The translations under genes and the position numbers were made by a program. The notes beneath the pieces are model-generated. The model ran no database searches and was not told the origin of the DNA. It saw only the letters and a list, made by a program, of their open reading frames with translations. This document shows positions 16,555 to 51,661 of a stretch of DNA of 64,000 nucleotides, piece after piece. This DNA comes from Octopus sinensis (taxonomy: Eukaryota), in NCBI RefSeq assembly GCF_006345805.1, contig NC_043007.1, forward strand, positions 22,878,001-22,942,000. Direction: 5' to 3'. Every line of letters begins with the position of its first letter. Positions within the stretch are counted from its first letter, which is position 1.

Positions 16555-16728
16555 ATGGGCAGCGGACAGTCAGCAGACTCGCAATCAACGGATAATTCCG
16601 GTTCAGAATCAAACCCAGGACTTCTACTTCTTTCAGATCTCATGAATGAACAATATCCGATTGAAAACCTCGTTTTTGAAGGATGCGGGACCAAAGCATT
16701 AGCTTACGTTGGAGCCATTAAGGTAATG

Positions 16729-16769
<41 letters not shown>

Positions 16770-19700
16770 CTCTTTTACTTGTTTCAGTCATTTGACTGCG
16801 GCCATGCTGGAGCACCACCTTAAATCGAGCAACTCGACCCCGGGACTTATTCTTTTGTAAGCCCAGTACTTATTCTATCGTTTTTTTTGCCGAACCGCTA
16901 AGTTACGGGGACGTAGACACACCGGCATCGGTTGTCAAGCAATGCTAGGGGGACAGACACAAACACACATACATATATACGACGGGCTTCTTTCAGTTTC
17001 CGTCTACCAAATCCACTCACAAGGCTTTGATCGGCCCGAGGCTATAATAGAAGACACTTGCCCAAGGTGCCACGCAGGGGCACTGAACCCGGAACCATGT
17101 GGTTGGTAAACAAGCTACTTACCACAAACGATATCAATTATGACGCTCTTCGAACGCATTCAATGTCGTAATTTTACTTATGGTCGATACCAACCTCATT
17201 TTTTTTTCCTTCTTTAAAATGTTGAATCGACATTTATTGCTTTGTTTAATCTCCGTTTTCTTTCAATTTAAACTTAATTTTGTTACTACTGTAATTCGAC
17301 AGGTCCTCGAAAAGATTGATGCTCTTCCTAAAATCAAGCGATTTGCTGGTGTCGGCACTGGTGCTGTTGTAGCTTGTCTCTTGGCTGCAGGCTTCGACTG
17401 CTACGCTCTGCGAGACTCGCTCAAACAACACTTGGAAAATGTACTTACTGGTAAGCATGTCACTTCTATACGAACAAGGGTAAAAAAAAAAAACTCCTGA
17501 GGTTTTTATATATGACTTCTACAGTTTTTTCTATCTCAGCATATTTGGACGATGTCGTTCATGCGCACTTATATTGTAAATCTAACGGAGCATACTGGTT
17601 TCACTTCATTTCGGTGTTCTCGTATCATCTGCTTGAAAGTCCTGGTGTTCCTGTCTTTCTTAGATACTAAAGCCTTTGTCTTTACAAAGTTTACCTTAAG
17701 ACTTATATAAAAAAAAAAAAATCCTCAGGATTGTTTGAATCTTATTTGTCGTTAACAGAACAATTCTCTGCGCAGGAACGGACAGTGTCAATATTGTCTT
17801 GCACACCTGGGTAGCTGATTGTGGGGTCCACGAGGCTAGAGAATACCCACTTCTGTAACTTGCAATCAATAAGTATTATAAGCCACGCTGCATTGCTTTG
17901 CTTGAAGTTTCGAAGTCTTATAATGCTACTAAAAATGTCCTTGGCTGTGCTCGTGGCTTTCCACTGTTAATTTATAGCTTGCACAGCTTTCGTACACACA
18001 CGGATATTTTCGGTTTAAACAGCAGTTTTTACTAGCGGTGTCATATGAAATTGTCAACCATAATTATGACCCTGGTATCGATCTATTGCATTTCAATCTG
18101 TTTTAGGGTTAGGGGTGGGTGGAAGGGTATCTTTTTTTTCTTCACAAATGTAAACAAGCCCAATCTGTTTCTTAAACGAGGGACATTTTCATACGGCACT
18201 GAATGTTTTCACCTCAATAGACGTCATTGATTGGTTGAAAGTGCAGAAATTGAAGGAAAAAAAACAAATCTTACAAACTATAGAATTTTCTCAATAAAGC
18301 CAAGAGAAAAAGATGTTTTATAAACACATTCTACCAGTATACTAAGTTTAAAAGTGTTTAGTTACGTGGAAATTATTAAAAAAAAACTGCCGTTCAAACC
18401 GAAAAGATCCGAAACGGTCGATGTCTTGCTTTCCATATTTTGCTTTACTGCTGAAGTATTTTTGTTAACGCGAGTTGCTTTACAGGTCCTGAATGAATGC
18501 ATTAAACAGCATGCTTTAAGAAATCTAATATCTCTGGTCTAATGCATCCCTTTCTACTCTATAGTAGAAACCTACAACTATTTTCTCTACACATCAAAAT
18601 GCCTTTAATGCAGGATCTAGCGTACTTTTAGATTTTGTCGACGGTAGCGGAGAGAAAGCTATAACTTTTGAAACTTGTCGTTTGTATTGTTTTCAGCCAA
18701 CCACTACAACAAAAAGGGTCAAGTGAATGAATTACTTAATAAGTTTGGTTGGAATTCCGGCAATAAATTCCTTGATTGGTTAGGGACTCTTCTAAAGGAG
18801 AAATACGAAGACGCCGATATAACGTTCCGAGAGGTGAGTACTTGGTATCGTCAACCCTGATAGACATTGACTGATATTTCCTAGTCGGCACTTTAGTAGC
18901 TTAAATCTGTTCTAAATCTCTTTCTCTGATATTTTTTTTTTTTTTTTTTTTTTTGTTCCCCCAGCTTTATGAGAAGACCGGCAAGGAGTTGTGCATCGTA
19001 GTTCTGAATCTAAACCGTAGGCGAGAAGAGTACTTTCACTGCAAGACCACACCGACTACCGCTATCCGTCGGGCAGTTGAGATGTCCATAAGTATTCCTG
19101 GTAACTTTTATCGATTGTTTCTCGTTTGCTTGTTTAACATAGAATGTGTTTATAAAAATCTTTTTCTCTTGGCTTTGAGAAAATTCTATAGTTTGTAAGA
19201 TATTTGTTTTTTTCTTCAATTTCTGCACTTTCAACCAATCAATGACGTCTATTGAGGTGAAAACATTCAGTGCCGTATGAAAATGCCCCTCGTTTAAGAA
19301 ACGGATTGAGCTTATAAACAATAGTTCTGTGTAAGTGGATTGGTAGTCAACATCACAGAACAAAGACGATGAGCTAGCAGAATCGTTAGTACGCCGGGTT
19401 GAATGCTTAGACATTTCGACTGCCACTACGTTCCAAGTACAGAATCTGATGTTGACTTTGCCTTTTTAATCCTAAGCCGATAAAATAAGAACCGGTTGAG
19501 TACTGGGGTCGACGTTCCAGAAATTGCTGGCCTCGTGCCAAAATTTTGAAACTATCACCAAACTAGCATTCACACTGAATCTCGATTAATTGAAACAAAC
19601 GCATCTATTAATGGTAAAACTCACTTAATTTTCCTATCACTGTCGGCGATTGTTTTTCTAGAAACTTTTCTAACACGGCCTTGAGCCTTATCAAAAATTT

Positions 19701-22700
19701 AAGCTATTAAAATTTATTTCTAATTGTCTTGTCTTAAATCTAGCTGGTGTCCTACTGTATATTTGTTCTTGGTGGAGGCCCAGTGGTTAGGGCAGCGGAC
19801 TCGCGGTCGGAGGATCGCGGTTTCGATTCCCAGACCGGGCATTGAGTGTTTATTGAGCGAAAACACCTAAAGCTCCACGAGGCTCCGGCAGGGGGTGGTG
19901 GTGAACCCTGCTGTACTCTTTCACCACAACTTTCTCTCGCTCTTTCTTCCTGTTTCTCTTGTACCTGTATTTCAAAGGGCCAGCCTTGTCACACTCTGTG
20001 TCGCGCTGAATCTCCTCGAGAACTACGTTAAGGGTACACGTGTCTGGAGTGCTCAGCCACTTGCACGTTAATATCACGAGCAAGCTGTTCCGTTGATAGT
20101 ATCAGCTGGGACCCTCCTCGTCGCAACCGACGGAGTGCTCCTACTATTGGTTCTTGATTTATCCTGCCTAAACCCAAAATGCAAAGGTGCTGGCCCTTAT
20201 GATGTTGGCCCCTACTTCTGCATGATCATTATGCAACAGAACATTCATACCATAATAATGGGGTTCCTCACTTTGTATCTTTCAGGTCTTTTTCAACCCT
20301 TTCAATTCAACGCTGGAAAATCGCGCAAAAACTATTACTTAGATGGTGGAATTCTCTGCAATTACCCCATCCATTGTTTTGATGGTAAGTTTTTTTTATT
20401 TTATTTTATTTATTTATTTATTTATTTATTTTTTATATAGGATTTAAATCTTTAGTACTGTTTAATTGGTTTTAAAACTCCTTGTAGGTTGGTGGCTTTC
20501 AATGGAACCCGGAAAAAAAGTCCCTCACAAATATCAACCAACTTCTGACTTAAAGACTCTGATTCGAGAACGCTTCTCTAGTTACAACTCGAAAACCATT
20601 GGATTCGCGCTGGTAAGGTTTATAAGTAAAACAATATAATTAAGCGTAATTTTTACATCGATCTTAAAAAATATTTGATCACCTACTTAACTGATCCCAA
20701 TTGAAATCTTGGTCGTTAAAATGTTTTTTCTACAATAGTTTGACGATTCCCACAGCCATGGTGAAGTGGACATTGAAATGAAACTGAGACTACATCAAAG
20801 TAAAGCAGTGGTCCCTATACCGACAACCAAACTTGGCAGGTGAGAATTCTAATAGTAATTCAGTAGCCGAGACTTCGCAATAAAAATCTTAGATCTTGCT
20901 TATCCTTAATTTCATTAACCATGTGCAGCACGGCTAAGGTTTCATACGCATCGATTTTTTTTTTTTTTTTTTTTATTGCTACTTTTATAAGTAGCATAGT
21001 TACATATTTCGGATCTTTTCGGCTTGAATTGCAGTTTTTAACATTTCTAGATAACTAAAAAATTTTAAACTTCGTATACTGGTAGAATGTGTTTATAAAA
21101 CATCTCTTGGCTTTATTGAGAAAATTCTATAGTTTGTAAGATTGTTTTCTTAAATTTCTGCAATTTCAACCAATCACTGACGTCTATTGAGTTAAAAAGC
21201 ATTCTGTGCCGTATGAATGTCCCTCGTTTAAGAAGCCGATTGGGTTTATTTATATTTGTGAAGAAAAGATGCCCTAAAACGGATTGAAATGCAATAGATC
21301 GATTCTAGGGTCATAATTACGGGTGACAATTTCATGACGCCACTAGAAAAAACTGCCGTTCAAACCGAAAAGATCTGCCTCTTATTTTGTGGTGTAGACA
21401 CAATAACTAGGTTACTTTCTAGACTGATTTCTGTTCTTACAGCATTTTTTACAAATACTAACAATATTTTCCCCACTTTTTTTTTTCTTCCAGAAAATAC
21501 AAAGCTGACGTAGAAAATGAGGATAAATTGAAAGACTTGTTCAAGAGCCTTCCAGAAGCTACCAAAAAGCTTGAAGCTGTTCGTACCAAAATGGCTACTT
21601 ATTTCTTTTAAGATATTTCCATCGCCGATTCGATCTTTTAGCATACGGCTGCTTCAGTATAGTAACACTTTATTTATACTTTCAGGCTTTGTTGAAAATC
21701 AAAAAAAGTGATAGTAATCTAGTGTCGGTTGTTCAATTGGTAAAGACATTGACCGGGAAGGTAAATATAAAAAAAAACAAACTTTGTTTTGCCTTCACCA
21801 GTGGCTTATAACAAATATCGTTGGCACAATTTCATTTAACTATATTAACCCACCTTGTAAGGGCGGCGAGCTGGCAGAAACGTTGGCACGCAAGGCGAAA
21901 TGCTTAGCGGTATTTCTGTGTTCAAATTCCGCCGAGGTCGACTTTGCCTTTCATCCTTTCGGGTCGATAATTTAAGTACCAGTTACGCACTGGGTTAGAT
22001 GTAATCGACTTAATCCGTTTGTCTGTCCTTGTTTGTTCCTTGTGTTTAGCCCCTTGTGGGTAGTAAAGAAATATATATATCTTACTCTTTTACTTGTTTC
22101 AGTCATTTGACTGCGGCCATGCTGGAGCACCGCCTTTAATCGAGCAACTCTACTCCGGTACTTAATCTTTTGTAAGCCCAGAACTTATTCTATCGGTCTC
22201 TTTTGCCGAACCGCTAAGTGACGGACGTAAACACACCAGCATCGATTGTCAAGCAATACTAGAGGGACAAACGCAAACAAACATATACACGCACGCGCAG
22301 ACATATACACGCGCAGACATATATATATACATATATACGACAGGTTTCTTTCAGTTTCCGTCTACCAAATCCACTCACAAGGCTTTGGTCGGCCCGAGGC
22401 TATAATAGACACTTGCCCAAGGTGCCACGCAGTGGGACTGAACCCGGAACCATGCGGTTCGTAAGCATGCTACTTACCACACAGCCACTCCTACGTCTAT
22501 CGATATATATATATACATATATATATATTAATTAACCCACCTTAATTTCTGCAGGAATCTAATTTCACTCAAACTGACATCGAAGCATTGTTTGGCATTG
22601 AAAAGAACGAAGACCAGTGTTCGAAACTACTGAAGAATGTCAGTACCAAAGAGATGGTGAGTAGGGTTGTTCTTATTCTTAGTTTCATTGGGGCTATGTG

Positions 22701-23500
22701 AAGGCTAAAAGGTCTTGTTCTTCTTACAGATCGCAATTATTGACCTGCTGTATTTTCTTGATCAGACCAGTCGCTTTCTCTACAAGTCCAACAAGCGTAC
22801 ATCAAGAACTGAAGTGACAAATATACTTTCATTCTGGAGTGCAATCAACGGTGTTGCGCACGGAAACGGTAAATTATTGGTAAGCATATCTCTTATATTG
22901 TCTTTGTCGTTAGACTGCAGCTATGCTGGGGTACCGACTTTTATTTAGTAGAACAAGTCAATCCAGGTCTTAAGGCTTGTTCTGTCTCTTGTAGAAATCG
23001 CTAAACGATATGGACGTGAATAAACTGTCAGCGGTTGTCAAACGGTAGACATTCAGCTGACGTACTACCAGTTTCCTTCTACCGAAACTACTCGTAAAGC
23101 ACCAGTTGACCTGGTATTTTAGTAGGTTCCACAGGACAACCTTGGGTACCTGTGGTGGCAAAGAATTTTTGTCACACAAACATTTCTGTACCTATTAACC
23201 GCTTTTATTTTCCTTTTGTAAATAGTCGAATGACATTAAAAGCTTTGACTTATTTTTCTCACCTCCAGAAAGAAAACTTGAAACGTACCGTTGGTATTTA
23301 CACTGGTCATGTAACTGGTAATTATGTCAAACTTGAGGAAGCTGACGAAACTTACCTTTTTCAGGTAAGGTCTTCACATTTTATCGTTTACTACCAATTC
23401 TATATCGTATCCTTATAGTATTTCTGTAATTGCAAATTTCTTTTTTCAGCAAGGATGGAACAGTACAGTGGCTTTCTTGCGTCAACTACAGAAGCAATAG
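16555..23500 (+). CDS. Patatin-like (ExoU/VipD-like) protein, gene A, predicted catalytically inactive, 490 aa, 13 exons
   Basis: Exons 16555-16722, 17303-17450, 18697-18833, 18965-19100, 20286-20384, 20488-20612, 20739-20839, 21494-21578, 21686-21760, 22555-22656, 22730-22879, 23269-23364 and 23450-23500. All are GT-AG and phase-compatible (1473 nt). Motifs: NLVFEGCGTKA, KRFAGVGTG, KELC..NLN...EYFH.KTTP, YLDGGILCNYPIHCFDGWWLSM, RTVGIYTGHV. AATAAA at 23673-23678. Confidence 0.9.
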
Positions 23501-28340: not shown

Positions 28341-28776
28341 TTTCGTGGAAGAAGGTTCATGTTCCTATAACCTGTATTAATTCTGTAACCCTTTAAAATG
28401 GAAGTTCATTTTCGGCACTTGATGCTTTGGGAACCAGACAGAAATTGCAGAAGACTAGTATCAAGAGTCGTCCATGGAACAAACATGATGTGCTTTGGTT
28501 TTGAAAGTTATCAGATAACGTTCTACCAGTTGGCGGCAGGTTTTCGTCACATTAAAAAGAAACTAAAAAAAACATAGAGCGATGTATTTCGCATGGAATT
28601 TTTGGTTCTCCAAGTCGACCTACCTTTTTTCTCTTCTTTTTAAGGTTTAATCTGTAAAATTCGACTTGCATGCTGGAAAATACTGTGGTTTTGAGGGTAT
28701 AGCGGCTGCCGTTGGCTGTCCAAGTGCGTGTTATTAAATGGAAAAACAGTTAGTATGAATCACCATAAGACATACC

Positions 28777-29974: not shown

Positions 29975-32245
29975 CAGTGATCCCTCGCTAATTCGCGGTT
30001 CAACTATCACGGATTCACAACTTCGGAGATTTTAAAAACATATATATATGAACACCTAAATTTTTTCATTAAATCCATTAAAATATTAATAATAAACATT
30101 ATTTCCTGGTCTAGGAACAACAAAACAAGCGCAAAATAGCAAAAAAGCATATATAGGAGTATTTGAACTTAAGACAGGCTGTGATTGGTGCAATAGAGAG
30201 AGACGACGAATCACAGCTTTTTATTTTGTATTCTGGCCTGTGATTGGTGCTTTGACCGATGCTCAGATCCGCAGCATCATTCCTTGTCTCTCTCTCGCGG
30301 CCATTTCGCTTCAAGCTTTCTCGCCGAGTGGTTTACTGTACTAATTTACGCTGTGCCGTGTATGGATTTTTTTGTTTCTTTGCTTTGAACTTTGCGTTTA
30401 TAATAATAAAGGACGTTACTGTATGCATTTTTACAAACTAAGGACGTTATATAGACCCCCTTGACTCAAGTTAGAGAAAGGGTGCGTATTATACACGAGG
30501 TTTAGGTTTTTCAGAGGTACAGGCCCCTAAAAATCCCCTGCAATGGCTCCCAAGCATGCTGCTTCTTCCAAGGCTGGTACTGAGCCTAAACGCAAACGAA
30601 GATTAATGACGATCGCTGAGAAGGTGAAACTTCTAGATATGTTGAAGGAAGGGAGAACTTTCGCTGCCGTAGCTCGCCATTTTAGCGTGAACGAATCCAC
30701 CGTCCGCTACATCAAGAAGGACGAAGCTAACATTAGGAAGACGGCTGCCATCACATTTAATAAGTTGGCAAAGAGAGTGGTTACGGCTTGTAATAAAACT
30801 ATCATCCGCATGGAAGCTGCTTTGGCCGTATGGATAGCCGACTGCCGAAAGAAGAACATAGCCTTGGATACGAACATCATCTAAGCAAAGGCTAGGAGCC
30901 TGTACGAGACTTTCGCCGCTAAGGAACCTGAGGACGACAGTGGCGACCACGAAGAAGAGGACAAAGACGACGTAGAAGATCCGTAACCAGGGACGTCCAG
31001 AGCTCGCAAGATGGGAGAAATCCGAAACGTGGTCCTTTTGCTATTCGTAAGACCCGCAGAAGAGAGAGCAGGTCAACACCGAAAGCATCGACGGATGGAT
31101 GAATGCGCATCCAGGCTCAGCTGTTGCGTAGGAAGTCGGGGACAAGAAACAAGAAGAAAGAGTGAGAAAAAGTTGGGCGAAAGAGTACAACAGGGATCGC
31201 CACCACTCCCTGGCGGAGCCTCGTGGAGCTTTAGGTGTTTTCGCTCAATAACCACACACAACGCCCGGTCTGGGAATCGAAACCGCGATCCTCCGACCGC
31301 GAGTCCGCTGCCCTAATCACTGGGCCATTGCGCCTCCACTGCTACTTCTGCTGACACGAGCGCTGCTGAAACATAAGTGAATGAAACTTTCAAGAAGATT
31401 ATCTCCGAAGGTGGATATAAGCTCGAACATGTTTTTAATATGGACGAGACGGGTTTGTTTTGGAAAAGAATGCCGTCCCGAACTTTCCTGTTCAAAGAGG
31501 AAGCAAAACCTCTGGCTTTAGCATACAAAGATCGTGTGACCCTCGTGATGTGGGGCATTGCTGCGGGATTTTGTTTAAAGCCAGGACTTATTTACAAGTC
31601 TAAAAACCCAAGGGCTTTAAAAAACAAAAACAAGAATCTGCTACCCGTACATTGGCTGCACAATCCAAAGGCGTGGATAACGAAGATGCTGACCTTCGAC
31701 TGGTTCCACCAGTGTTTTATCCCGCAAGTCAAGGTGTATCTATTAGAGAAGGGCTTGCCATTCGAAATGATTCTCCTTATGGATTAAGCTGGTGGCCACG
31801 CTACTGATCTGTCGCATGAAGGCATTCATATTGAGTTCCTGCCGCCCTACAACACTACGTCACTTATTCAACCAGTGGATCAGGGGGTTATCAGGACGTT
31901 CAAGGCCCTATACACGAGGAATGTCCTGGCGAACCTGGTTGCTTCTGTGGATGCCGCCCAAGAAGACGAAGACGAAAATTTTGATTTGAAGGCATACTGG
32001 CGGCATTACACAATTGCAACGTGCCTTCAAAACATCCAGAAGGCATTGCAAGAAATGAAACCTGCCACCATTAACGCGAGCTGGAAAAATTTGCGGCCCG
32101 AGGTTATTTAGGACAACAAAGGATTTACACCTGCCGAAATCCAACACTCCGCAGTACAGAAAGCTTCGCAGTTGGCTGCGATCATTGGAGGTGACGGCTT
32201 TGCAGACATGACCACGGGAGACATCGACGCGTTATTAGACTGCCC
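29975..32245 (+). mobile_element. Tigger/pogo DNA transposon with a disrupted transposase
   Basis: TA then CAGTGATCCCTCGC...TTCGCGG left terminus at 29975. ORF 30543-30884 has CENP-B-type HTHs (KRRLMTIAEKVKLLDML...NESTVRYI). DDE_1 pieces (VFNMDETGLFWKRMP, LMD, MDQGVIRTFK) lie at 31377-32111. It has stops, frameshifts and a SINE insertion at about 31070-31338. No right TIR was found. Confidence 0.88.
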
Positions 32246-32653
32246 TAAGGCAGCGAGCTGGCAGAACCGTTAGCACGCCGGGCGAAATGCGTAGCCGTAT
32301 TTCGTCTACTGTTACGTTCTGAATTCAAATTCCGCCGAGGTCGGCTTTGCCTTTCATCCTTCCGGGGTCGATAAATTAAGTACCAGTTACGCACTGGGGT
32401 CGATGTAATCGACTTAATCCGTTTGTCTGTCCTTGTTTGTCCCCTCTATATTTAGCCCCTTGTGGATAATAAAGAAACAGTTATTAGACTGCCACGTTTC
32501 TTCTGAAGGAGTACGGAGTAGATATTTTAGAAGGCTCCGGGTTCAAAAAGGAGGTAAAAATGTAGAAGCTCAGAGGTGGGGCTGAGGAAACTTTATTCCA
32601 TTTCTCATCTTCATCTTATCATTCATTATAACACACACTTCTCTTTTCTTTTA

Positions 32654-33532: not shown

Positions 33533-33885
33533 TTGGGTTGTCCGGAAAGGTCGTGCAGATTTTTAAAGGAAAGAAAAAGGTCTATAAATACTTGCCATTA
33601 CATTTTTAATCAACCAAATATGAACCATTTTGTTGCACAATGCGTCTCCATCTTTCCTTTAACTTGAAAATACCCTTTTCCCAGAACTGAGGTGGTTTCA
33701 TGGCAAAGAATTCATCAAGGTATCTCTTTACGTCATCCAAGGAATTGAAATTTTTACCATTAAGACTATTCTTCAGAGACCTGAATAAGTGGAAATCCGA
33801 AGGAGCAATATCTGGTGAATATGGAGGGTGGGGTAACACATCCCAGCCAAGCTGCAGCAATTTTTGTCTGGCTCCCAAAGCATCA
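33533..33885 (-). mobile_element. Mariner transposon 3' fragment
   Basis: Peptide LGWDVLPHPPYSPDIAPSDFHLFRSL...WEKGIFKLKERWRRIVQQNGSY* contains the YSPDLAP signature. Mariner-type terminus TA|TTGGGTTG at 33531-33540. Confidence 0.9.
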
Positions 33886-34329
33886 AGTGCCGAAAATGAA
33901 CTTTATTATCTTCCATTTTTAAAGGGTTACAGAATTAATACAGGTTATAGGAACATGAACCTTCTTCCACGAAAAGATAGCTTAAATTGTGCTCTAAATG
34001 GAGGTGTTGTCAAATCCTATTTTATGAACTCAATTATGTTCTAAAATAAGTCGAAAGGTTAGCTACTATAAATCGGTAACCCAATACATGTCATGTGATA
34101 AGAAAACAGATGGAAAATAGAAAAGAAAGCAGATGAAAAATTTTATCCACAAATTTTACTTGTTTTACGCATTACTTTAATAGAACGGGCAGGAACTGAA
34201 CTTAAAACTTTCAGTAATATAATTGCAATTCACGGAGGTAATTTTCACTTCACCTGGTCACGTAAAATAAAAACGGGCGGAACAATTTCAAATGGAATCT
34301 ACTCAAATTTGCATAGGTCTTAAACAAGC

Positions 34330-34336
34330 TATAAAT
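34330..34336 (+). promoter_or_regulatory. Candidate TATA box of gene B
   Basis: TATAAAT 46 nt upstream of the MGNQSS ATG (CAACATGG context). This would place the upstream in-frame ATG at 34292 outside the transcript. Confidence 0.5.
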
Positions 34337-34375
34337 ATTGATTGTCAGAGCTCAGCGAGTACTGACGCCAGCAAC

Positions 34376-35308
34376 ATGGGAAACCAAAGTTCACGTAACC
34401 TCGGATCTGAATCGAGCCCAGGACTTCTGCCTCTAACATCCCTTAAGAAAAAGCAGTACCCATTTGAAAATCTAATCTTTGAAGGATGTGGTGCCAAAGC
34501 ATTTGCTTATGCCGGAGCAATAAAAGTAAGTTTATTTTTATCTTCCCCCTTTTCTTTTATTCAATAGTTCTATTTCTAAAATACGCAAACGCTGTCTTCT
34601 TTTAAATTACTCTGATAAATATATTAGTACTTAAATATACAGTTTAAAGCTATCGTATCTTTTTTTCAACTACTGACTGTAGTTTTATATCTTTTTAAAC
34701 TTGAAGCTTCTTACATTAATCGCAATCGCCTTGTTCTCATAAGCTCTTTAGCCACATTTTGTTCTAATAAACACTTCCCTTTTAAACTTCTGGAAATCTT
34801 GCAGGTCCTCGAGAAAACTGGCATTCTCTCTAATATCAAACGATTTAGTGGTGTTGGAACTGGTGCTATCGTAGCCTGTCTTTTGGCCGCTGGTTTCAGT
34901 TGCAATTCTCTACAACAGACTGTCAGTGAACATCTGGAAAAACTTTTGATTGGTAAGAAATGTTTTTGATATTCGTTAATACTGTCACTCTCTCCCTCGA
35001 TAATTTTGCATAGAAAACTTATTGCTTACCTACTCGAATAGGTGTCTCCACTGCAATTGATAAATAGTATTGTTGTATACGTAACTAGCAGTATCGCCCG
35101 GCGTTGCTCTGGTTTGTTTTGACCCTTTAGAATTATAATTTTTGAAAAGTAAAAATTTTGCATTCTGTAGCTTGTTATTCTCTTTTAAGTGAACATTTTT
35201 CTGGTTGCAATATACCGAAAACTGACGACACAGTAGTCAAAAAATCGTTAAAAAATAGGGATTTTCATAGAAAAAAAAGCACCTTTTTGGTGTTAACATG
35301 GTCCGATT

Positions 35309-35352
<44 letters not shown>

Positions 35353-38325
35353 CTCTTTCCTTCTACGGAAGGAAGAGCAAGCCTTCTATCGTACTCTCAA
35401 TTTTGGTCAACTTTTGCCGCAGGGTCTCGGAGGAGATAGTGTTAGTTGAAGGCTGCCATACACAGACAATTTCAGCTTTATATATATATATACATATAAT
35501 ATATAGAGAGAGATTAGTGTTTATAACTGATTCCAGCATCGTTAAAATTGCAGTTTTAGGATTCGATATCTTTCGTATAACTCTTGGTAATTGTTGTTAG
35601 ATCTACATTTATTGGCATTCGGAAGTCACGGCAAAAAAAACTAAATCCCTGTGTGGCAACTAAGCTTAATCTAGAACAAATTTTTTTACCCTTTTCAGAC
35701 AACCAATGCACTGATGAGGTTACCCAAGATGAGGTGTTCGAGAAATTCGGTTGGAATTCTGGCCAAAAATTCTTTGACTGGTTCGGCAATGTTCTAACGC
35801 AAAAGTGTGGAAACGCTGACATAACATTTCAAGAGGTAAGTACACAATGCATGTCTTTGTTACAAAGAATATGTACTGGGAACACAATTCTAACACTAAT
35901 TCCTGTTCATACTCTTTCAGCTTTACAAAAAGACTGGCAAGGAATTGTGTATTGTTGTTGTGAACGTAAACCGAATGAAGGAAGAATATTTTCACCCCAA
36001 AACAACACCTGATGTCGTTGTTCGTCTTGCAGTCCTTATGACCATCTCTGTTCCCGGTAATTATGCAATCTACAGTTCAATTTTCCTCATCGGTAACCTA
36101 ATGGTTTGCTGTCTTGTTCCAACATTTAAAAATTAATGTTTTTAAGTTAGACGTTTGACCAACTCAATGTAGCTTTTAGCCTATATTACCTGATAATTTG
36201 TAAATTTGCCCACTTAGAAAATTTTTTATCCTCTTGCCCTAACTATTTTGCTTCATCCATTTGTCTTCGAATCCAATTCTATATTTTGAAAACCTAGCTT
36301 GACTCTTAATTTCCATAAAATCGTTTCTGTTCTTCCCATGACCGTTGGAAACCCGTTTTTGAATACTTATCACTCATAAATTTATTAATAGGTTTGTCCC
36401 AGCCTGTGAAATTTAGTGTCGCTGATTCCCCCGAAAGCTACTACCTGGATGGTGGGATACTTTGCAACTACCCCATTCATTGCTTCGATGGTTGGTGGCT
36501 ATCGATGGAATCCTATAACTCATTTCTTCAGAAATGTCCAACTCCTGATATTAGAACGCTGCATCGAGAACGTTTCTCTGGCGTCAATTCCCAAAGCCTC
36601 GGATTTATCATGGTAAGTTTGTTTCCCCACTTTTATATTCGTTTCAGTACTGCAGTCCACTGCGTTCAGTTTTGTATCCTGGTTTATAAAGATGTCCCAG
36701 TTAATCACGAGCTATCCTTGTTTATTAACGAATACCAGTAAACAGGAATAATTTACAAAAATGGAATAACGTAAGTTACTGTGTAGAGTTTCTGTAAGAA
36801 TTTCCAAGAACTACGAAATTGTTCACACTAAGGCCTATCGTTCAAAAAAAATTTGAATTTTGACTTCATGTTTCTCAGCGCATTAAATTTGTATTCTCGT
36901 TTAAATCCAGTTCGACGATTACCACACCGCTAAGACATATAAAACAATGAAGGAACGCCTGGATCTTACTGAAGCTGCTATCGCCATACCCGAAAGCGAC
37001 CTTGGCAAGTAAGTATTTTACGAGTACATATGCTGTATGGAAAGCTGAGTAGTAAACCAATTCTACGGAGTGGGCGTAGACTATAACTTCAGATAATTTA
37101 ATCTTTATTTAAATACGAACTTAACTTTTATAACTGATGGCATTTAGTTTCAACTAAATTGTATTTCTTTTAAAGGAAATACAAAGAGGTCTGTCAAAAT
37201 ATTAAGCAGATGAAAATGCTATTTGAGGAGTTTCCAGAGGCCATGACAAAGCTTTGTGGGGTAAGTTACAAATTTTCAAATTTAAATCTGTCTATTGAGC
37301 TTAATCCTTTTGAGCCCTTGTGGCTATAATAAAGTTAGCTTAATCCTGATGATGTAAATGGTTTAAAATATAACTGAATTCCTGTCCATAAACAGGTTTT
37401 GGAGAAAATCAAAGACTGCAACAATTTGGCATCGGTTTCTGACTTGACAAAGGAGATAACCAACCAAGTAAGCGTTGAAACTAAATTCTTCTAAATCGTA
37501 TTTATCGTTCACTTTGATACACGGACATTTGAAAATGGGTTTGGTCACTTTTCTGTTTATAGGAATCTTTCTCTGCGATAGAAATTCGGGCGTTATTTGG
37601 AGTTGAAAATAATGAAAATGAGTGCCTTGCTTTTTTCCAAAAGCATTTTGATGCCAAGGAGATGGTGAGTTGGTTGGCCTTAGATATACCTAAACTTGTA
37701 TTGGATTTTTTTTGTAAACTTTTCACTCTTATTTCTTTCAGCTTCCAGTTACTGAAATTATAAGTTTTATTGAGAAAAGAACCTCTCGCAATTTTTACAA
37801 CTATAGTAAATTGTCAGCAAGGTCGAATATAACCAATTTATCCTCATTCTGGGGGACAATTAATAACGCTATCCATGAAACCAATAAACTGACTTCGGTA
37901 AGTATCGTTGTATATAGTTGACGTAACAATATCAGCATATATAAGATGGTTGAACTTACTCCTCCTGTTTATCTTCCAGGAAGCCGACTTGACCCGTACT
38001 GTTGGTATTTACACTGGTCATATTACCAATAATGATATTGACCTGGATGAAGCCGACGAAATCTATTTATTTCAAGTAAGTCCTCGATTTCTTTGACTCG
38101 TTTCTCCGTCAAATTCTTTGTCTTCTATAACTGCAACTTTCTAATTTGTAGCATGGCTGGAACTGCACAGTGGCCTTCTTGCGACAATTCGGCGCCCTAT
38201 CGATTATAACACCAGAAGAAATGGTATCTATCAGTACCCAGGCACCACCAGATGAACCAGACCAAGAGCTCGAAACAACAACGGAACAGACAACTGAATC
38301 GAAAACCACGGACCTTGAAGATTGA
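34376..38325 (+). CDS. Patatin-like (ExoU/VipD-like) protein, gene B, predicted catalytically inactive, 524 aa, 12 exons
   Basis: Exons 34376-34525, 34805-34952, 35699-35835, 35921-36056, 36392-36612, 36911-37008, 37176-37260, 37396-37467, 37563-37664, 37742-37897, 37980-38075 and 38152-38325. All are GT-AG and in phase (1575 nt). Motifs: NLIFEGCGAKA, KRFSGVGTG, YLDGGILCNYPIHCFDGWWLSM, RTVGIYTGHI. AATAAA at 38400-38405. Confidence 0.9.
35085..35507 (-). mobile_element. Non-autonomous Helitron in intron 2 of gene B
   Basis: Same 3' terminus as the 1115/1498 copies (...GCAACGCCGGGCGATACTGCTAG|T) and a TC/TA-rich 5' end, but a different body. Confidence 0.65.
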
Positions 38326-40620: not shown

Positions 40621-41188
40621 ATAACACGCCTGTTTTCAACTGAGAAATGCTTTCGAAGCCACAACTTTATATTTTAGTCTGTCACTAATTTTTTTTTAAG
40701 TGGATCGTCGTAAGCAAAAGGACATGGTTGTGGGGAAACCAAAATGAAGCTTTTGCGACGATCAAGCAGCGCACACCAGTAAGTCTTTAATTCGCCTGTT
40801 AACGGTTTTAAAGTGTGTGCAGCTATGAGAAACTTATCTGCTGCAGTTCTCTTGCATTCCACCGAATTTCTATTTGACATTTCCATCAGACTGAAATCAA
40901 AACCTATCGACAAGTTGAAATTTGAACCCACGCTCCTCGGTTCTGAATAATTCACTGCAACTAGAAGATGAATAAACATCGACTATGTCCATTGCACGAT
41001 TTTACAGACTCGACAAATTCTGCTTTTTAATTAATTTCATTGTGTGGTAAGTAGCTTGCTTACCAACCACATGGTTCCGTGTTCAGTCCCACTGCGTGGC
41101 ATCTTGGGCAAGTGTCTTCTGCTATAGCCCCGGGCCGACCAATGCCTTCTGAGTGGATTTGGTAGACGGAAACTGAAAGAAGCCTGTC

Positions 41189-41229
<41 letters not shown>

Positions 41230-41244
<15 letters not shown>

Positions 41245-41588
41245 AACGGCAGTTTGTCTGTGTGTGTTTCTGTGTGTCTGTTAGGTTGTACCCTCACCCT
41301 GACCACGGCTTTTAACCGATTCTGATGAAACTTGACACACACATAGCCCAATGTCATAATTCAAAACTAACGCAGCGAAAATTTTGAAAAGTTCCCCCAG
41401 TTCTGAAAAAAATCGATAAATTCGACATGGGGTCGAGAATCAGAAACACGAACCACAGACTGTCTAGGGGACGCAACTCCACCTTTTTAACTCTCAAAAA
41501 AATTTACCATTTTTTGGCTATAACTCTCTAAAAATGCTTTATAGTTATTTCCCTTACAAACCTGAGCAATGCCGGGCGATACTGCTAG
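41230..41588 (+). mobile_element. Non-autonomous Helitron inserted into the (TA)n tract of a SINE-B copy (41040-41822)
   Basis: Ends CCTGAGCAATGCCGGGCGATACTGCTAG|T. The SINE halves flank it on both sides. Confidence 0.7.
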
Positions 41589-44239: not shown

Positions 44240-44470
44240 AAATTGTGGAGAGAACTAAAGTCTTGACTAACGATTTAGTTTCAGGAAGTAGTGGAGACGT
44301 TTCCGCGATAAACGTCAAAATTCTGAACGAAATTGCCTCCTGAATTTTCTGAAATATCGAATTGTTTCCAGCAGTTCCACTTTCGCGAAGATAAAGATTA
44401 AAGCAGCAGCAAAAAGGCAACGCTAGGCCCAGAACTCCAGCCAAGACCACCAGCCGCCCTGCCATGCAGT
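44240..44470 (-). mobile_element. Probable decayed LINE apurinic-endonuclease (APE) domain fragment
   Basis: GRLVVLAGVLG...FNLYL...NNSIFQKIQEAI...TFIAE follows the GR-x-VV...NxYxP...FF..L...IxGDFN pattern of LINE endonucleases. The match is degenerate. Confidence 0.35.
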
Positions 44471-45915
44471 CAATGCCGAAGACCGTTCCATTCCCGACTT
44501 GGCTTTCTAAACCACGTCAGGTTTAAGCATCATTGAGGCACCCGATGAACAAAACACGATTGGTGCCAACGACTAGCTGAAATTGATTTTAAATTGACAA
44601 GGCCAGTAAGCTTGAGGATAGGAGATTAGGCTATTACATTGCTCCTTATGTTCAATTTGTCCTTATTTTATCGACTCCGAAAAGTAAAGCCGGCATCGAT
44701 GGAATTTAAACGACTAAAACACAGACGAAATTCTTAACACTTTACCCGGCGTGCTCACGATCCTGGCAGCTCGCCGCCTGTACTGGCTGAAATATTAAAA
44801 TAGCGTCATTGGAAGGGTTATTTCCGATATATTTCAGTTTGTGTCACGTCACTTCAACACCAGATGGTTAATAGCTAGGAAATAATTTAAGCAGTATGAT
44901 GGTGGCAAAACGATGTTATTCCCCCCACTTACAGAAATTGAGTTACTCCGCTATATAAGCAAGCAGCTGGCAGACACGTTAGCACGCCGGGCGAAATGCT
45001 TAGCGGTATTTCGTCAGCCGCTGCGTTCTGAGTTCAAATTCCACCGAGGTCAACTTTGCCTTTCATCCTTTCGGGGTCGATTAAATGAGTACTAGTTATA
45101 CACTGGGGTCGATATAATCGACTTAATCTGTTTGTCCCCTCTATGTGTAGTCCCTTGTGGGCAATAAAGAAATAAGAAACGTTAGCACGTCAGGCGAAAT
45201 GCTTAGCAGTATTTCGTTTGTCTACGTTCCGAGTTCAAATTCTGCCGTGGTCGACTTTGCAGTTCATACTTTCTGGGTCGATAAAGGTCAATCCAAGAGT
45301 ATATGTTGATTTATCTCCATTGAGCTCGTGTTAATGAAGGAGATAATTCCTGGTAACACATTCTGATTCAAAGTCGTGATCGTCTTAGGTAGAGGAAATT
45401 GGTTGCGATTCGAGGGAAAGTGATTGCCGTATCTATCAGGTCCTGTTGAATAGACGGCGTTTTATGCGGGTTAATATAGAAAAGGGACTAAAAGAATAAC
45501 TATTTTAGGTAAAGTGAAGATTGTACGTCGATTATTCAGTAATCCGATGAAGTTTGTTTTGAAGTCGAAACCGTCTGCAAAGGACAGTCATTTTTCTACC
45601 GATTACATCACTGGTCTTAAATGTAGTTTTGTATATTTAATACACGGTGTTTATGCATAATAAATATTAATACTTCGTAGTCATCTTAACATTTAGCTTC
45701 TATTGAAGCGATTATATATTGTGAACAAAAAATATAACCACATACATTCGTTGTAAAACTTTATTTCGATAACAACAATTCATTAAAGCCATAAACTATT
45801 TCGTTGAAATAAACAAAAAACTGCAAATTTTAGACGAGTTCAAATTGATCAAAGATTTTCGGGTATTCGTAGCCATTGTTGATGCAAATTCGTTTAAAGG
45901 GATTCGTCTTCGGAT

Positions 45916-48900
45916 TCAGGAAGTATCTGAACTACTAGATAGCAGGCTTTTCACTCCTGACGTGGAAGGCATGGACATCAGGTTGATATCTCGCAAGAAT
46001 GCCACAGCGCAGTTCCAACCATGCTAAAGAAAAAAAAAATAAAGTTGAAATTACACAAGACATTCTTGGTGAGAATGGCGGTCTGAGAATGGAAATATAT
46101 AAACTCACCTGATACAGGTAGGCTGCGTCGGCTTCATGCAGGCTATCATCATTATTGGTAACGTGACCAGTGTAGATGCCAACAGTGCGGAACAAATCGG
46201 TTTTCTGGAGGTTAGATATCAAAAGTAAAACTTGAAAGTTTCTAAACTGTCGTCAAATTGTGAATCTATATAATTTAAAATAATTGCAGTGTGGAAGGTG
46301 TTTATAAGCAATTTAAGAAACACAAAATCCGTTAGATTCACTTCATTTAAATTTAATTTGTCAAAATATTTTCGTCGCTTGGAGACTGCGACCAGTTCAC
46401 TGACAAAATTCCGTGCTGACATTTGTTACTGACGTAGTTCGGCACAACTCATTACAATACCTATTTCTTTACTACCCACAAGGGGCTAAACACAGAGGAC
46501 AGACAAACAGATCAAGTCGATTATATCGACCCCAGTGTGTAACTGGTACTTCTTTAACCGACCCCGAAAGGATGAAAGGCAAAGTCGACCTCGGAGGAAT
46601 TTGAACTCAGAACGTAGCGGCAGACGAAATACTGCTAAGCATTTCGTCCGGCGTGCTAACGTTTCTGTCAGCTCGTTATGACAATACCGGTGAGGGGCAA
46701 CCCAAGTTAAGATTTAAGGTGGCCCTCGTTTAAATTATATCAAATCTGGCAAAATAATGTGGATTTTAATTATTTTGAAACCAGGTACCTGAAGATAATG
46801 CCTTAGCCAACTAGCGTTGCTAGAATATGTGCCGCCCGGGGCAGCCCATCCATTTACCACCCCCGGATCCCACAAGCAGCACATTGCTTACAGACCCCAA
46901 AGTGCCGTCCTCATTCGACACCGCTAGTGGTCCTAGCTTTGTTTAGATTTTTTATTACCCACAAGGGGCGAACATAGAGGGGACACTACAATCTGATTTG
47001 GTGTCAGACTTACGAATGATAAATACACAAAATTAAATTTAAAAATTAACACAAAATGACAATATAATTAAAAACAAAAATTCAGGAAACGAAAAGTACT
47101 TAAATTCGATGTCTTTAACAATTCTTAATTACTTGGAAAATTGATATAAAAACAAATATAGAAAAAGCTGCACTTACCGTAACTGCTTTGTTCTTTTCGT
47201 TCGATACACTATTAACCGCTCCCCAAAATGAAGACAAATTATTCACTGCAAACTTTGGTGTTATCTGGCTGTAGTCGTAGAAAGACTGCCAGTGTCTTCT
47301 CTCGACAAAAGACACCACCTTGAAAGCTGGCATCTAAAAGACAATATAGGAAGATCACCTTTTAGCATTCGGATTACTCAATCAAATATCATTCACGTGG
47401 TTTCAAACTAATCATGCATCATCTCCGTTTCTAGATTTCGGTGATATGACTTATTTTTTAAAAAAGAAAACATTGTACGACACGTTAAGCTGGCTCTGGC
47501 CGGTTTGTAAAAGAAATTTAAAATGCTAGGCTAATCTATCTTGCAGACAATTATTTAGAGGCAAAGTAAATTCAAGCTTGACAACCTACCCTATCATCAC
47601 TGTTGGCATATGCTCGAAGCAATTCGTAACATTCTCTTGCGTTGTTACCCACTCCAAATAATACATTGATTTCAGCCGTACTGAAATTATTCTAGGAAAA
47701 AGGAAATGAAAGCTACATAAATGCATTTGAAACAAAAAATCCTTGTGATTACAGACTAATCGTTTACGTATATAATGGTATGGATTATAATGGTATGGAT
47801 TACATACGAAAAAATAATTTACTCACGCCTTTGGTCACTTCTCCTACCAAGTTAACTATGGATACTAAGTTGTCAGTTCCCTTAAGTGTCTCCAAAATCT
47901 GAAAAGTTACATAACCAAGTATTAAAAAGGTAAAAGCTATCGAGTCTAAAATGTTTCAAACTTTGGCATATGACCAGCAGTTTAAGGGGAGGGGCTAAGT
48001 CGATTACATCGACCCCAGTGCTGAACTGGTACTTGAACCTAAAAGGATGAAAGATGAAAAAAGGCAAGTCGATCCCGGTGGAATTTGAACTCACCACGCT
48101 GAGCAAGATGCTTTGCATTTTGCCTGTCATTACGTTCTAATTATTCTTCCAACCCGCCGCCTTTTATCAAGTTTAAGAATACTGATAGAGAAAAGGGTCA
48201 AATTCTTATTAAATCCCACTATTTCATTAGAGAGAAGCATGCATATCCAAGATACATAAAAATGAATAATTATTTAAGTCTTTTATCATAGCTCTAATTC
48301 ACCAGGGTTGCACTGGGCTAGACAAAAACTTAATCTTGAATTTAAGATCTAATTTAGAAGCGGGAGGAGGACACTCACATGTCTTAGTTTTTCATAGGCT
48401 TCTTCAAAGCCCGTACACATTAGTTGCATCTGTTGCAGCTTGTCTCTGGCCTCTTTCCATTTCCTTAGAATAAAAACAAATTCAGAAAAGTACATTACAC
48501 TAAATATTGCCACCGATGACCTCGAGATCATTTTAATACAGATTTAGAACGTTATTGAAAAGTCAGTGAGAAAGAAAATACTTACATGCTAAGTTCGGTT
48601 GCTGGCAAAGGGACAACGCCTCCGGTTTGGTCAAGTCGCCGTTTCATTATATCGTATATCTCGTCGTTGTGATAATCGTCAAACTGGAAAAAAAAAAAAA
48701 AAGAAGTTGCAAACAGATTTGACGGATGCTATTGAAATTTAAGAGACTACAGGCACTTATGAAAAAAGTTTTAATCAAACATTTAAGGAGCAAATAGGAT
48801 TAAAAAACTTTCAACTTGTAGATTTAACCAACGAAATACATTAAAATGATTAACATTTATGAAGAAAAAAAAAAATCACTTTACCGTCATAATGCCAAGA

Positions 48901-49291
48901 CTCATGTGGTTAAATCCAAAGAAACAGTCAAGCTCCAAAGAACTCAAGTTAACAGACGGTTGACATTTGCGAAGAAAGCGGTCACCGGGCTCCATCGATA
49001 GCCACCATCCTACAAAAGAATTTCAAAGCTCATGAGATCTGCGACAATTTTTTTTTTCTAGAAAAAAGAAAAGTCGCTGCACATACCATCAAAGCAGTGA
49101 ATTGGATAGTTGCAGATAATCCCACCATCCATGTAGAAATCTCCGGAGGACTCACTCAGACTTAATTTGCGGGGACGGTATATACCTATATTAAAAGAAA
49201 ACGGGTCGAGTTCGAATAATTTAGCCAATTAGTCTTGACAACTAAATATTAGTCAGGTTACAATATTTTGTGAACTAAATATTTTCTGTTA

Positions 49292-49333
<42 letters not shown>

Positions 49334-51661
49334 TTTCACTGAAGTACAACGGGGGAAAGTACATTTACAACTAAATCAGCGAGAAATTAAGTTGGAAGCT
49401 ATGCAGAACTAGCTTAAATTGTAGAGAAAATAGAATTAATCGAAAGTCACAAAATAAAAATTCAGATGTAAAAAAAAAAAAATTTTTTAATTTAATCATT
49501 TAAAAGATAAGAAAAAATTACACGAATTCAACCAAGAGATATTCCTGGAAGCAAGTGAAGTTGAGGCAGGCGAATTCGTTAGGAAAAATCTATTCAATAC
49601 AAAACTGGCACACGGTTACAACGACGAAAGCTTCAGTTGATCCGATCAAAGGAACAGTTTGCTCGTGAAATTAATGCGCATGTGGCCGAGTACTCCACAA
49701 ACATGAATACTATTAACGCAGTTCTCGGGGAGATTCAGCACAACAGTGGGACAATACTAGTCCTTTGCATAACAGGTACAACTTCCTTTTTGCCAGCTGA
49801 GTGGATTGGGACTACGTGAAATAAAGTATTTTGCTCAAGGACAACTCGCAACTAGGAATCGAACTCGCGGCCTTACAATCGTGAGCCGATTACCCTAGCC
49901 ATTATACTACGCGCCTTCAATCAATACAAGTGAGAACCAATTTTAACCGAAAATTGCATTAAATATAATTAGTAAATCACTTGACAGTTCAACTGCTGCA
50001 AAAGGAACATTACCAAATGGGACAAAATCCTAGCGAAGATTTGAAAGAGCTGAAAAAAGGCCACCGTCGTGTCTATGGTGTTTTCACCACTTTACAACCG
50101 GCGTTGGTGCATTTACGTCCCATAATTTAGCGATTCGATAAAAGAGACTAACAGAATCAGCACCTGGGTAGGCTTATTCGACTAAAAATTCAAGGCGGTG
50201 CCCTACCACTATCGCTGTCTAATGACCGAAACAAATTAAAAGAAAAAAAATTACCCGGGATAGACATGGCTAAGGAAACTGCCCGTCGGATGACAAAGTC
50301 GGGAGTAGTCTTCGGGTGGAAATATTCCATTTTATTTTGATTTAAATTCATGACCGGAATACACAGCTCATGACCAATTTTGTCGTATAACTGAAATAAT
50401 GAAAAGAAAATTAATCGGAATCAAAAGGGCTCCATTTTAAAAACGGAAAAAAAAGAATCTTCACAGCAGACTCACCACAGTAAGAGAGAATGGGGTGGGG
50501 TGAAAAACAACCTTGCGCCAGATTAAAAACCATGCTCTCACCTGCTGAAAGGAAATGTCAGCGTCTTGAAACCTATGTGTCAAAATTTCTCCTAACCAAT
50601 CATGAAATCTACGGCCGTCTTTCCACCCAAGCGCCTCTTCGTGGCTAACATTGGGGGTATATTGAAGATCTGAAATGGAAATTAGAAGGCTGGAAATTCG
50701 ATACGAAATATTCAGTCCTAGAATATACCCAAATAATCATCATTTTCAGTCAATTATCCACGGTGTACGATACACAGTTCATTCATAGCAATCAAACTTG
50801 ATTTGTAGACTTTCGGAGCCCGTTAGTAAGTTAGTCAAGAAGGTCTAAATTTCGTACATTCCGAACAGTAAAATTTCTAATCAACGGTGAATGAGATTAA
50901 CGAAATGTAATTCGTCAACTGAAAAGGAAAGAAGAAAAAAAAGCTTACCGACAGTCAAGCTTTGCAGGTGCATATCAAGTAGAGACTGCACAGAATTTGC
51001 ATCATAACCAATAGCCAAGAGGCAAGCTACGATAGCACCGCTACCCATTCCTGCGAATCGCTTAATATTATAGAGAATACCGACTTTTTCGAGGACCTGT
51101 TGGATTGTGAAAGGAAGAAACTTAAGACGATACACGAAGAGATGGAACTGCAAAATTTAATTTTTATATTGAAAAATATTTCTTTAAAAAATTACAATAA
51201 AGGCCGAAAACGCCTTTATATCTCTTTGTTATAGGCATATAGCCTGAAAACACATAGTGGACATTACAAAATTTAGGGTACATATAATAAATGATTAATA
51301 TGAAATGAGTTATTTGTAATGGAATGGCTTACTAGCCCCCCCCCCCAAAGCTCGCAGTTTCATTTTACAGTTCTTTTATACAGTTTGTAATACAGCTGAA
51401 AATGCCTTTAGACAGAATCAGGACCAGCGAATTCAATAAACTTAACAATTTTTTTTTTTTTAGAGAAATATCAAAGATGTTGGGGGAAAATACCTTCAGA
51501 GTTCCAACAAAAGCATAGCCTTTAACACCGCATCCTTCGAAGACAAGGTTTGTGAATGGATAACGTTTACCGATTAGATCAGTTACAGGCAGAAGCCCTG
51601 GGCTAGCTTCAGAGCCAATGTCACGTGGGGCGCTTGCGTTACACGACAGTGATAATCCCAT
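45916..51661 (-). CDS. Patatin-like (ExoU/VipD-like) protein, gene C, predicted catalytically inactive, 506 aa, 13 exons
   Basis: Minus-strand exons 51661-51494, 51096-50949, 50669-50542, 50390-50255, 49185-49087, 49009-48885, 48683-48586, 48463-48379, 47898-47827, 47691-47590, 47333-47178, 46204-46109 and 46023-45916. All are GT-AG and in phase (1521 nt). Motifs: NLVFEGCGVKG, KRFAGMGSG, YMDGGIICNYPIHCFDGWWLSM, RTVGIYTGHV. AATAAA(-) at 45760-45765. Confidence 0.9.

Follow-up and report, generated by a model that had tools for sequence, protein, structure and literature searches.

A 64,000-nucleotide stretch of the Octopus sinensis genome (contig NC_043007.1, positions 22,878,001 to 22,942,000; the whole of it is referred to here as the window) contains three spliced paralogues with a patatin phospholipase fold, g1, g2 (LOC115217280) and g3 (LOC115217281), in each of which a glycine occupies the position of the catalytic serine. 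The evidence is strong that these genes belong to an ancient patatin clade that is under selection and probably non-catalytic. The explanation favoured here, with moderate confidence, is that g1-g3 are tandem paralogues of a coleoid subfamily that lost the nucleophile together with its surrounding apparatus and were kept as non-catalytic patatin-fold proteins.

Loss of the serine and decay of the catalytic apparatus

The match to Pfam Patatin (PF01734) that had been expected of the spliced proteins was obtained for all three products (g1, 88.3 bits, E = 1e-24; g2, 77.3 bits, E = 2e-21; g3, 68.6 bits, E = 1e-18), above the cut-off of 27.7 bits and over positions 1-188 of the profile's 191. The AlphaFold2 model built for g2 (predicted local distance difference test [pLDDT], 78; predicted template modelling score [pTM], 0.76) has an alpha-beta fold with a patatin core, for which Foldseek returned VipD, CapE/CapV, PlpD, potato patatin, iPLA2-beta and cPLA2 at a probability of 1.0, with ExoU among the best neighbours; the top 42 matches in the PDB were all patatin or cPLA2-type structures.

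Within this fold, the middle glycine of the nucleophile elbow falls exactly on the catalytic serine, both when aligned by HMMER with a solved bacterial patatin effector and in a 210-sequence alignment of the family. The glycine codon at this position differs between the genes (GGC in g1, GGA in g2, and GGT in g3), and the Asp of the DGG motif is present in each. The elbow positions, the codons and the retained Asp given by the initial annotation were all confirmed on the sequence, and its description of full-length, frame-preserving spliced paralogues is borne out by GT-AG gene models free of internal stops. The glycine-rich loop that forms the oxyanion site does not conform to the family pattern G-G-G-x-[KR]-G in any of the three genes (GCGTKA, GCGAKA, and GCGVKG).

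The extent of this decay is apparent from the family alignment, in which the elbow column holds Ser in 181 of 210 sequences (Ser-type) and Gly in 24 (Gly-type). Twenty of the latter, all with the elbow G-[V/M/A]-G-[T/S]-G, group together as one monophyletic branch by neighbour-joining (clade A) that divides into octopod and decapodiform subclades; a further group, clade B, is described below. The GGGxKG loop has its second Gly in 97% of the Ser-type members and its last Gly in 91%, and the DGG motif is found in 169 of these 181 (93%). Nearly all of the Gly-type sequences have an altered loop, which reads GCGxK[A/G] in the octopods and is scrambled in the cuttlefish half of the clade, and the dyad Asp is lost from 14 of the 24, including 9 of the 10 decapodiform members and clade B. 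The octopod subclade has kept DGG, with the sole exception of a protein from Argonauta (P0005; NGG). The EF-hand loop pattern, found in 130 of the 181 Ser-type sequences, occurs in none of the 20 sequences of clade A, and no EF-hand Pfam match was obtained for g1-g3. Likewise, the Arg184 and Ser186 of a 'VRMS' motif are 93-96% conserved in the Ser-type sequences and have lost their conservation in clade A. What is still conserved throughout the clade is the fold, the Met-Gly start, the motif 'FDGWWLS' and a C-terminal 'RTVGI...QGWN'. Because several catalytic elements lost constraint together, the pattern points to a real loss of Ser-Asp catalysis, and the decay of the oxyanion loop, the 'VRMS' residues and the EF-hand loop alongside the serine supports the non-catalytic role first proposed from the elbow.

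Parent family, age and selection

The octopus proteins have full-length homologues across molluscs, cnidarians, echinoderms, amphioxus and a sponge (more than 100 named invertebrate proteins, at 33-38% identity over 84-97% of g2). In their common layout, a patatin domain precedes paired EF-hands and a C-terminal segment that is conserved, with a Met-Gly start in many; the Ser-type protein P0017, for example, has Pfam EF-hand matches at residues 400-468. With this invertebrate EF-hand patatin family (Magallana gigas, Haliotis, Nematostella, Strongylocentrotus, and octopus proteins of the LOC115216501-/LOC115216174-type), g1-g3 have in common full-length homology (E = 1e-74 to 1e-97), domain order, the Met-Gly start and the motifs 'CHPKTTP', 'CNYPIH.FDGWWLS' and 'RTVGI'. 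While that family keeps GGGxKG, GxSxG, DGG and the EF-hand, g1-g3 retain neither the Ser nor the calcium-binding loop, and two glycines of their glycine-rich loop are gone. Ser-containing paralogues of this type (P0053 and P0080) are retained elsewhere in the octopus genome. Entries of the family are named 'PNPLA domain-containing' or mis-named 'calmodulin', and the family is uncharacterised.

Against 1.84 billion representative proteins, a profile of clade A scores the clade's own members at 616-689 bits and every other sequence at ≤460 bits. The octopod half comprises sequences from O. sinensis, O. bimaculoides, O. vulgaris and Argonauta hians in four paralogue lineages, three of which are in the cluster; the fourth is on a different chromosome, and nothing indicates that these tandem paralogues constitute a 'system', as they had been called. 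The decapodiform half consists of at least seven cuttlefish lineages, all intronless, and its 90%-identity clusters contain two proteins of Acanthosepion (Sepia) pharaonis (CAE1247306.1 and CAE1266215.1), which carry GVGTG and in one of which TGA replaces DGG. The genes are single uninterrupted open reading frames (ORFs; L002, 10001-11614 [+] and 17475-18926 [-]; L003, 10001-11458), several of them on one 76.5-kb contig (P0015, P0027, P0122 and a 483-residue neighbour), which, against the 12-13 exons of the octopod genes, suggests origin as a retrocopy followed by tandem duplication. One decapodiform sequence, P0010, is present as an intact 488-residue ORF on ten contigs of 2.5-3.3 kb in Logan assemblies of several sequencing runs, and some of these contigs have common end points, as transcripts would.

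Since both halves of clade A carry the glycine, the Ser-to-Gly change occurred before the octopod-decapodiform split, which published clocks place approximately 250-300 million years ago. The proposal that the loss is older than the duplications was upheld, as Gly is found in every member of the clade, including those of Argonauta and Acanthosepion pharaonis. Clade B, in which the elbow reads G-S-G-[T/S/A]-G and DGG is replaced by GGG or EGG, includes a protein of the leech Helobdella robusta (XP_009014220.1; P0180) together with P0145, P0163 and P0171, and in the limpet Lottia gigantea (P0167) the elbow is G-T-N-Y-G. From the leech-containing clade, together with the limpet protein, loss of the Ser or of the dyad is therefore recurrent in the invertebrate family. 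The sister of clade A is the long-branched clade B with P0123 and Lottia P0167 by neighbour-joining; by profile search, the octopus Ser-type protein P0080 ranks top.

In O. bimaculoides, three orthologues with open ORFs occur in the same order and orientation as in O. sinensis, and selection was assessed between these two species, with the ratio of nonsynonymous to synonymous substitution rates (dN/dS) estimated by three methods. The ratio was 0.26-0.39 for g2, 0.53-0.75 for g1 and 0.81-1.03 for g3, the last not significantly below 1 over the whole gene (Z = 1.3; amino-acid identity of the orthologues, only 73.7%). Between paralogues it was approximately 0.22-0.27, with dS saturated. Substitutions were distributed unevenly: of 84 columns conserved in the clade, scored in the orthologue that took no part in defining them, none had changed in g1 (Fisher p = 1.6e-7), one in g2 (p = 1.9e-4) and six in g3 (p = 1.7e-6), compared to 15-30% of the remaining positions (~30% for g3). 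Neither species has a broken ORF or has lost a GT-AG site, indels comprise whole codons only, and the probability that random substitution would have introduced no stop codon is 0.009 for g1, 0.018 for g2 and 0.0008 for g3. The genes thus have a conserved core in fast-evolving surroundings, a pattern in which two species do not separate relaxed from positive selection. Of the initial claim that selection maintains intact genes, synteny, open ORFs and protected sites stand, but constraint is weak overall.

These results bear on whether at least one of the genes, g3 above all, is a duplicate that has no function or was inactivated recently and is drifting into a pseudogene. The whole-gene ratios of g3 and g1 favour such drift, as does the low identity of g3 to its orthologue, and a ratio near 1, which the initial annotation had named as evidence against its proposal, is what g3 exhibits when taken as a whole. 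However, the avoidance of clade-conserved columns by g3 substitutions, the retention of its frame and of the GT-AG sites of all 12 introns in both species, the small chance of escaping stops and the intact Argonauta orthologue (P0005) argue against it; neither broken ORFs or splice sites nor a neutral pattern was found in g1-g3, the near-unity ratio of g3 notwithstanding, and drift is considered highly unlikely. That the serine is missing only through an error of assembly, annotation or choice of exon 2 is extremely improbable. No support for it was found beyond the mis-set N-termini of the public g2 and g3 models, which do indicate that the annotation is imperfect. Separate assemblies, made independently for O. 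sinensis, O. bimaculoides, O. vulgaris, Argonauta hians and Acanthosepion pharaonis, all have the same Gly, as do the Logan contigs bearing cuttlefish-clade genes, and exon 2 is 89-97% identical in DNA between O. sinensis and O. bimaculoides. An alternative exon 2 with GxSxG, which the initial annotation had named as evidence against its proposal if seen in transcripts, was absent from the window in a permissive tblastn search (five exon-2 peptides, three from the window and two of the Ser-type; E up to 100), which returned the three known exons only.

Gene models, predicted products and surroundings of the cluster

All-against-all comparison of six-frame open segments identified three collinear sets of exon-sized matches, at ~16.5-23.5 kb (+), 34.3-38.3 kb (+) and 51.7-45.9 kb (-), from which splice-aware models were reconstructed using consensus GT-AG sites that preserve the reading frame and alignment of the paralogues (Table 1). 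All introns of g1, g2 and g3 are GT-AG, there are no internal stops, and exon lengths and phases match one-to-one among the three genes except for the fused exons 5 and 6 of g2. The g2 product is 100% identical over all 524 residues to an O. sinensis protein (P0001; LOC115217280), and that of g3 equals P0004 save for a 10-residue N-terminal extension of P0004. Transfer of the g1 exon boundaries to the O. bimaculoides locus yields exactly the public protein P0003, including use of the weak donor of intron 8, which validates the g1 model. This donor (intron 21579-21685) is GTTCGT in O. sinensis and GTTTGT in O. bimaculoides, conserved and used in the public O. bimaculoides model. In g2, the intron between exons 5 and 6, present in g1 (20385-20487) and g3 (49086-49010), has been lost (36392-36612); because the fused exon also occurs in O. 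bimaculoides, the loss predates the split of the two species.

Table 1. Positions of the three paralogues, their catalytic-site motifs and example repeats in the window
Feature	Positions	Strand	Description
g1	16555-23500	+	Ser-less patatin paralogue, 13 exons, 490 residues
g1 exons	16555-16722, 17303-17450, 18697-18833, 18965-19100, 20286-20384, 20488-20612, 20739-20839, 21494-21578, 21686-21760, 22555-22656, 22730-22879, 23269-23364, 23450-23500	+	
g1 oxyanion/anion-binding loop	16678-16698	+	Degenerate, E-G-C-G-T-K-A; family consensus G-G-G-x-K-G
g1 nucleophile elbow	17348-17362	+	G-V-G-T-G, GGT GTC GGC ACT GGT, exon 2; Gly at position 74 replaces Ser
g1 dyad Asp motif	20339-20350	+	LDGG, Asp retained
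g2 (LOC115217280)	34376-38325	+	12 exons, 524 residues from the conserved MGNQSS start
g2 exons	34376-34525, 34805-34952, 35699-35835, 35921-36056, 36392-36612 (5+6 fused), 36911-37008, 37176-37260, 37396-37467, 37563-37664, 37742-37897, 37980-38075, 38152-38325	+	
g2 oxyanion loop	34481-34501	+	Degenerate, E-G-C-G-A-K-A
g2 nucleophile elbow	34850-34864	+	G-V-G-T-G, GGT GTT GGA ACT GGT, exon 2; Gly68 replaces Ser
g2 dyad Asp motif	36445-36456	+	LDGG, Asp retained
g3 (LOC115217281)	45916-51661	-	13 exons, 506 residues
g3 exons	51661-51494, 51096-50949, 50669-50542, 50390-50255, 49185-49087, 49009-48885, 48683-48586, 48463-48379, 47898-47827, 47691-47590, 47333-47178, 46204-46109, 46023-45916	-	
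g3 oxyanion loop	51518-51538	-	Degenerate, E-G-C-G-V-K-G
g3 nucleophile elbow	51051-51037	-	G-M-G-S-G, GGA ATG GGT AGC GGT, exon 2 (51096-50949)
g3 dyad Asp motif	49132-49121	-	MDGG, Asp retained
Repeat examples	12519-12851, 14064-14495, 22263-22532, 41040-41360, 58261-58536		
Further repeat examples	4502-4744, 6135-6374, 32248-32445, 46490-46678, 55110-55442		

The public models of g2 (552 residues) and g3 (516 residues) begin at upstream in-frame ATGs (34292-34375 and 51662-51691, respectively) that are interrupted by stops in O. bimaculoides and are not conserved. The conserved start is MGxxxS in good Kozak context (MGSGQS in g1, MGNQSS in g2, and MGLSLS in g3), and the public start codons of both models are corrected accordingly; the longer versions mask what is a candidate N-myristoylation site at the Met-Gly start. 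As these N-termini are polar and, judged by eye, without a hydrophobic signal sequence after the Met-Gly start, the proteins are most likely cytosolic, and would be membrane-peripheral if myristoylated. On the same grounds, a secreted or venom protein was considered and judged unlikely.

A C-terminal NHL or beta-propeller domain was also considered. A sequence search of the PDB gave a low whole-sequence E-value for g2 residues 421-476 (~37850-38170) against the 'Pizza' designer NHL propellers, which looks like an artefact of one query segment being summed over the repeats; the individual stretches were each non-significant (E = 18-94) and the domain was rejected. In the g2 model, the region where the propeller had been suggested is a strand and a long helix. 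Separately, the O. bimaculoides annotation (L001, 17816-23457) joins the g3 orthologue to a neighbour with Thioredoxin_8 and NHL domains in a model of 1131 residues, which is probably the source of the misleading 'NHL repeat-containing 2-like' names of the O. vulgaris orthologues. The Thioredoxin_8/NHL neighbour gene was not seen inside the window.

The window has a G+C content of 39% and abundant interspersed repeats. Upstream of g1 is a long terminal repeat (LTR) retrotransposon (7907-12428) with 223-nt direct repeats (7907-8129 and 12206-12428; 99% identical), a reading frame of 964 codons with reverse transcriptase and RNase H (8094-10985) and one in-frame stop, and an integrase (10989-11720); its near-identical LTRs suggest a recent insertion. 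A long interspersed nuclear element (LINE)-like sequence on the reverse strand (52106-54583; reverse transcriptase, 52937-54583; zf-RVT, 52106-52933) lies upstream of the g3 start codon, at a distance below 500 bp, and may affect the g3 promoter. Between g1 and g2, a broken pogo/Tigger-type transposase with a CENP-B N-terminal domain and DDE_1 extends over three frames (30531-32108, +), and a short fragment (33609-33902, -) resembles the C-terminus of a mariner transposase, without a Pfam match. Short interspersed repeats of at least two families recur many times on both strands, also within introns of g1 and g3, and there are long TA-rich microsatellites (for example 15880-16260 and 16730-16790). 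The window gave no match to a tRNA or an Rfam family.

Function, related proteins and significance

The favoured explanation of a non-catalytic clade starts from an ancestral family protein in which an MGxxxS start, in all probability myristoylated, preceded a patatin phospholipase domain, paired EF-hands and the conserved C-terminal segment. One copy in the octopod-cuttlefish ancestor lost the nucleophile Ser, probably in a single transition (AGY to GGY), after which constraint was lost on the glycine-rich loop, on two near-invariant residues of the active-site region and on the calcium ligands of the EF-hand, with additional loss of the dyad Asp in cuttlefish. The fold, the Met-Gly start, 'FDGWWLS' and 'RTVGI...QGWN' were kept and are still shielded from substitution between the Octopus species. 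Such proteins would have ceased to act as Ser-Asp acyl hydrolases and would have been kept as cytosolic, membrane-peripheral proteins, with the binding of lipid, membrane or a partner protein as their likely role.

Several points weigh against this explanation. Octopods keep DGG, a partial GCGxK loop and an invariant hydroxyl beside the Gly, a combination compatible with residual or altered chemistry; the whole-gene dN/dS of g1 and g3 is high; the public models P0001, P0004 and P0006 match genome records only; and modulation of the Ser-containing octopus paralogues of the LOC115216501-/LOC115216174-type, one possible role, is pure conjecture. In addition, the pPLAIII patatins of plants (Arabidopsis, rice and ginseng), in which GxSxG has become GxGxG and the Asp of DGG is often replaced (by G, S or T) though some members keep it, are reported to retain lipid acyl-hydrolase activity (PMC7031755, PMC4623698). 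Since these are reported active without the Ser and often without the Asp, loss of the motif alone is no proof of inactivity, and the statement of the initial annotation that substitution of the Ser abolishes hydrolysis is unsafe.

It is possible, though unlikely, that the octopus proteins are still enzymes, hydrolysing or transferring acyl groups through the neighbouring Thr/Ser and the retained Asp, or by a Ser-independent mechanism. Beyond the plant precedent and the DGG and partial loop of the octopods (Argonauta P0005 excepted), Thr or Ser directly follows the elbow Gly in 23 of the 24 Gly-type sequences, in at least two separate clades (the coleoid and the leech-containing), and occupies that position in 4 of the 181 Ser-type sequences, where Ala, Val or Ile follows the Ser in 170. 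A working nucleophile would be expected to conserve both the Asp and the glycine-rich loop, but the former is lost from most decapodiform members and clade B and the latter is degenerate almost everywhere; because this decay occurs within the same clade, a shifted nucleophile is disfavoured, and the evolutionary rates are high for an enzyme. A structural explanation is also available for the hydroxyl residue. Thr and Ser are generally favoured as N-terminal capping residues of helices, and in the g2 model the helix after the elbow starts at residue 69 (Thr69), from which the Thr/Ser is read as a replacement cap that would re-cap the elbow helix after the change to Gly and is most likely not a nucleophile. 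A broader form of the argument, in which the change to Gly relocated or re-invented the chemistry and G-x-G-[T/S]-G arose convergently in cephalopods, the leech-containing clade and plants, is quite unlikely; the hydroxyl neighbour or a Ser-independent route would then support transacylation, a thioesterase or a slow 'single-turnover' lipid sensor, and GxGxG patatins, far from being dead enzymes, would form a functional class that recurs.

The resemblance to the plant pPLAIII proteins extends to the GxGxG box (GVGTG, GVGTG, and GMGSG) and to an Asp that is variably lost, as it is across the decapodiform and octopod members. This resemblance is convergent: the cephalopod clade is of independent origin, nested among animal Ser-type proteins with which it shares the C-terminal half, and the octopus proteins have a Met-Gly start, a degenerate EF-hand pair and a coleoid-specific 'QGWN' C-terminal motif. 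Further, the pPLAIII proteins are reported to be active, whereas the octopus proteins are probably non-catalytic. Bacterial ExoU, VipD, VpdC and the CBASS proteins CapV/CapE, which provide the best solved-structure matches, resemble g1-g3 in their patatin core and in how far apart the loop, elbow and Asp lie, but there is no common C-terminal domain, and g1-g3 are eukaryotic, intron-containing and without the Ser. Membership in the bacterial VpdC or CBASS cGAMP-activated lipase families was rejected (56.7-70.5 bits versus 1000, and 23-28 versus 200, for the NCBIfam equivalogs), and matches to PADLOC phospholipase effectors were weak. A precedent for a lipase-fold protein without a nucleophile in a non-catalytic role is ABHD5/CGI-58, a pseudo-hydrolase that is a co-activator of the patatin lipase PNPLA2/ATGL and a regulator of lipid metabolism, and that published work describes as regulating PNPLA lipases; it has an alpha/beta-hydrolase fold and an unrelated sequence, and a link of the octopus proteins to any lipase would be by analogy only.

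Full-text literature searches returned nothing on cephalopod patatins, animal patatin pseudoenzymes or these LOC identifiers. The claim that no such cluster had been described holds in that no published account was found for animals, but the plant pPLAIII precedent narrows it to animals.

If the proteins are truly non-catalytic, coleoids have kept a dead lipase, duplicating it repeatedly, since approximately the octopus-cuttlefish split, a pattern that would imply a lineage-specific function linked to lipids or membranes and would be the animal parallel to the puzzle posed in plants by pPLAIII patatins without Ser and Asp. The clades form a natural series, from Ser lost and Asp kept (octopods) to both lost (cuttlefish and leech), that is experimentally exploitable. 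Further, they draw attention to the large parent family of EF-hand patatins, widespread and uncharacterised in marine invertebrates.

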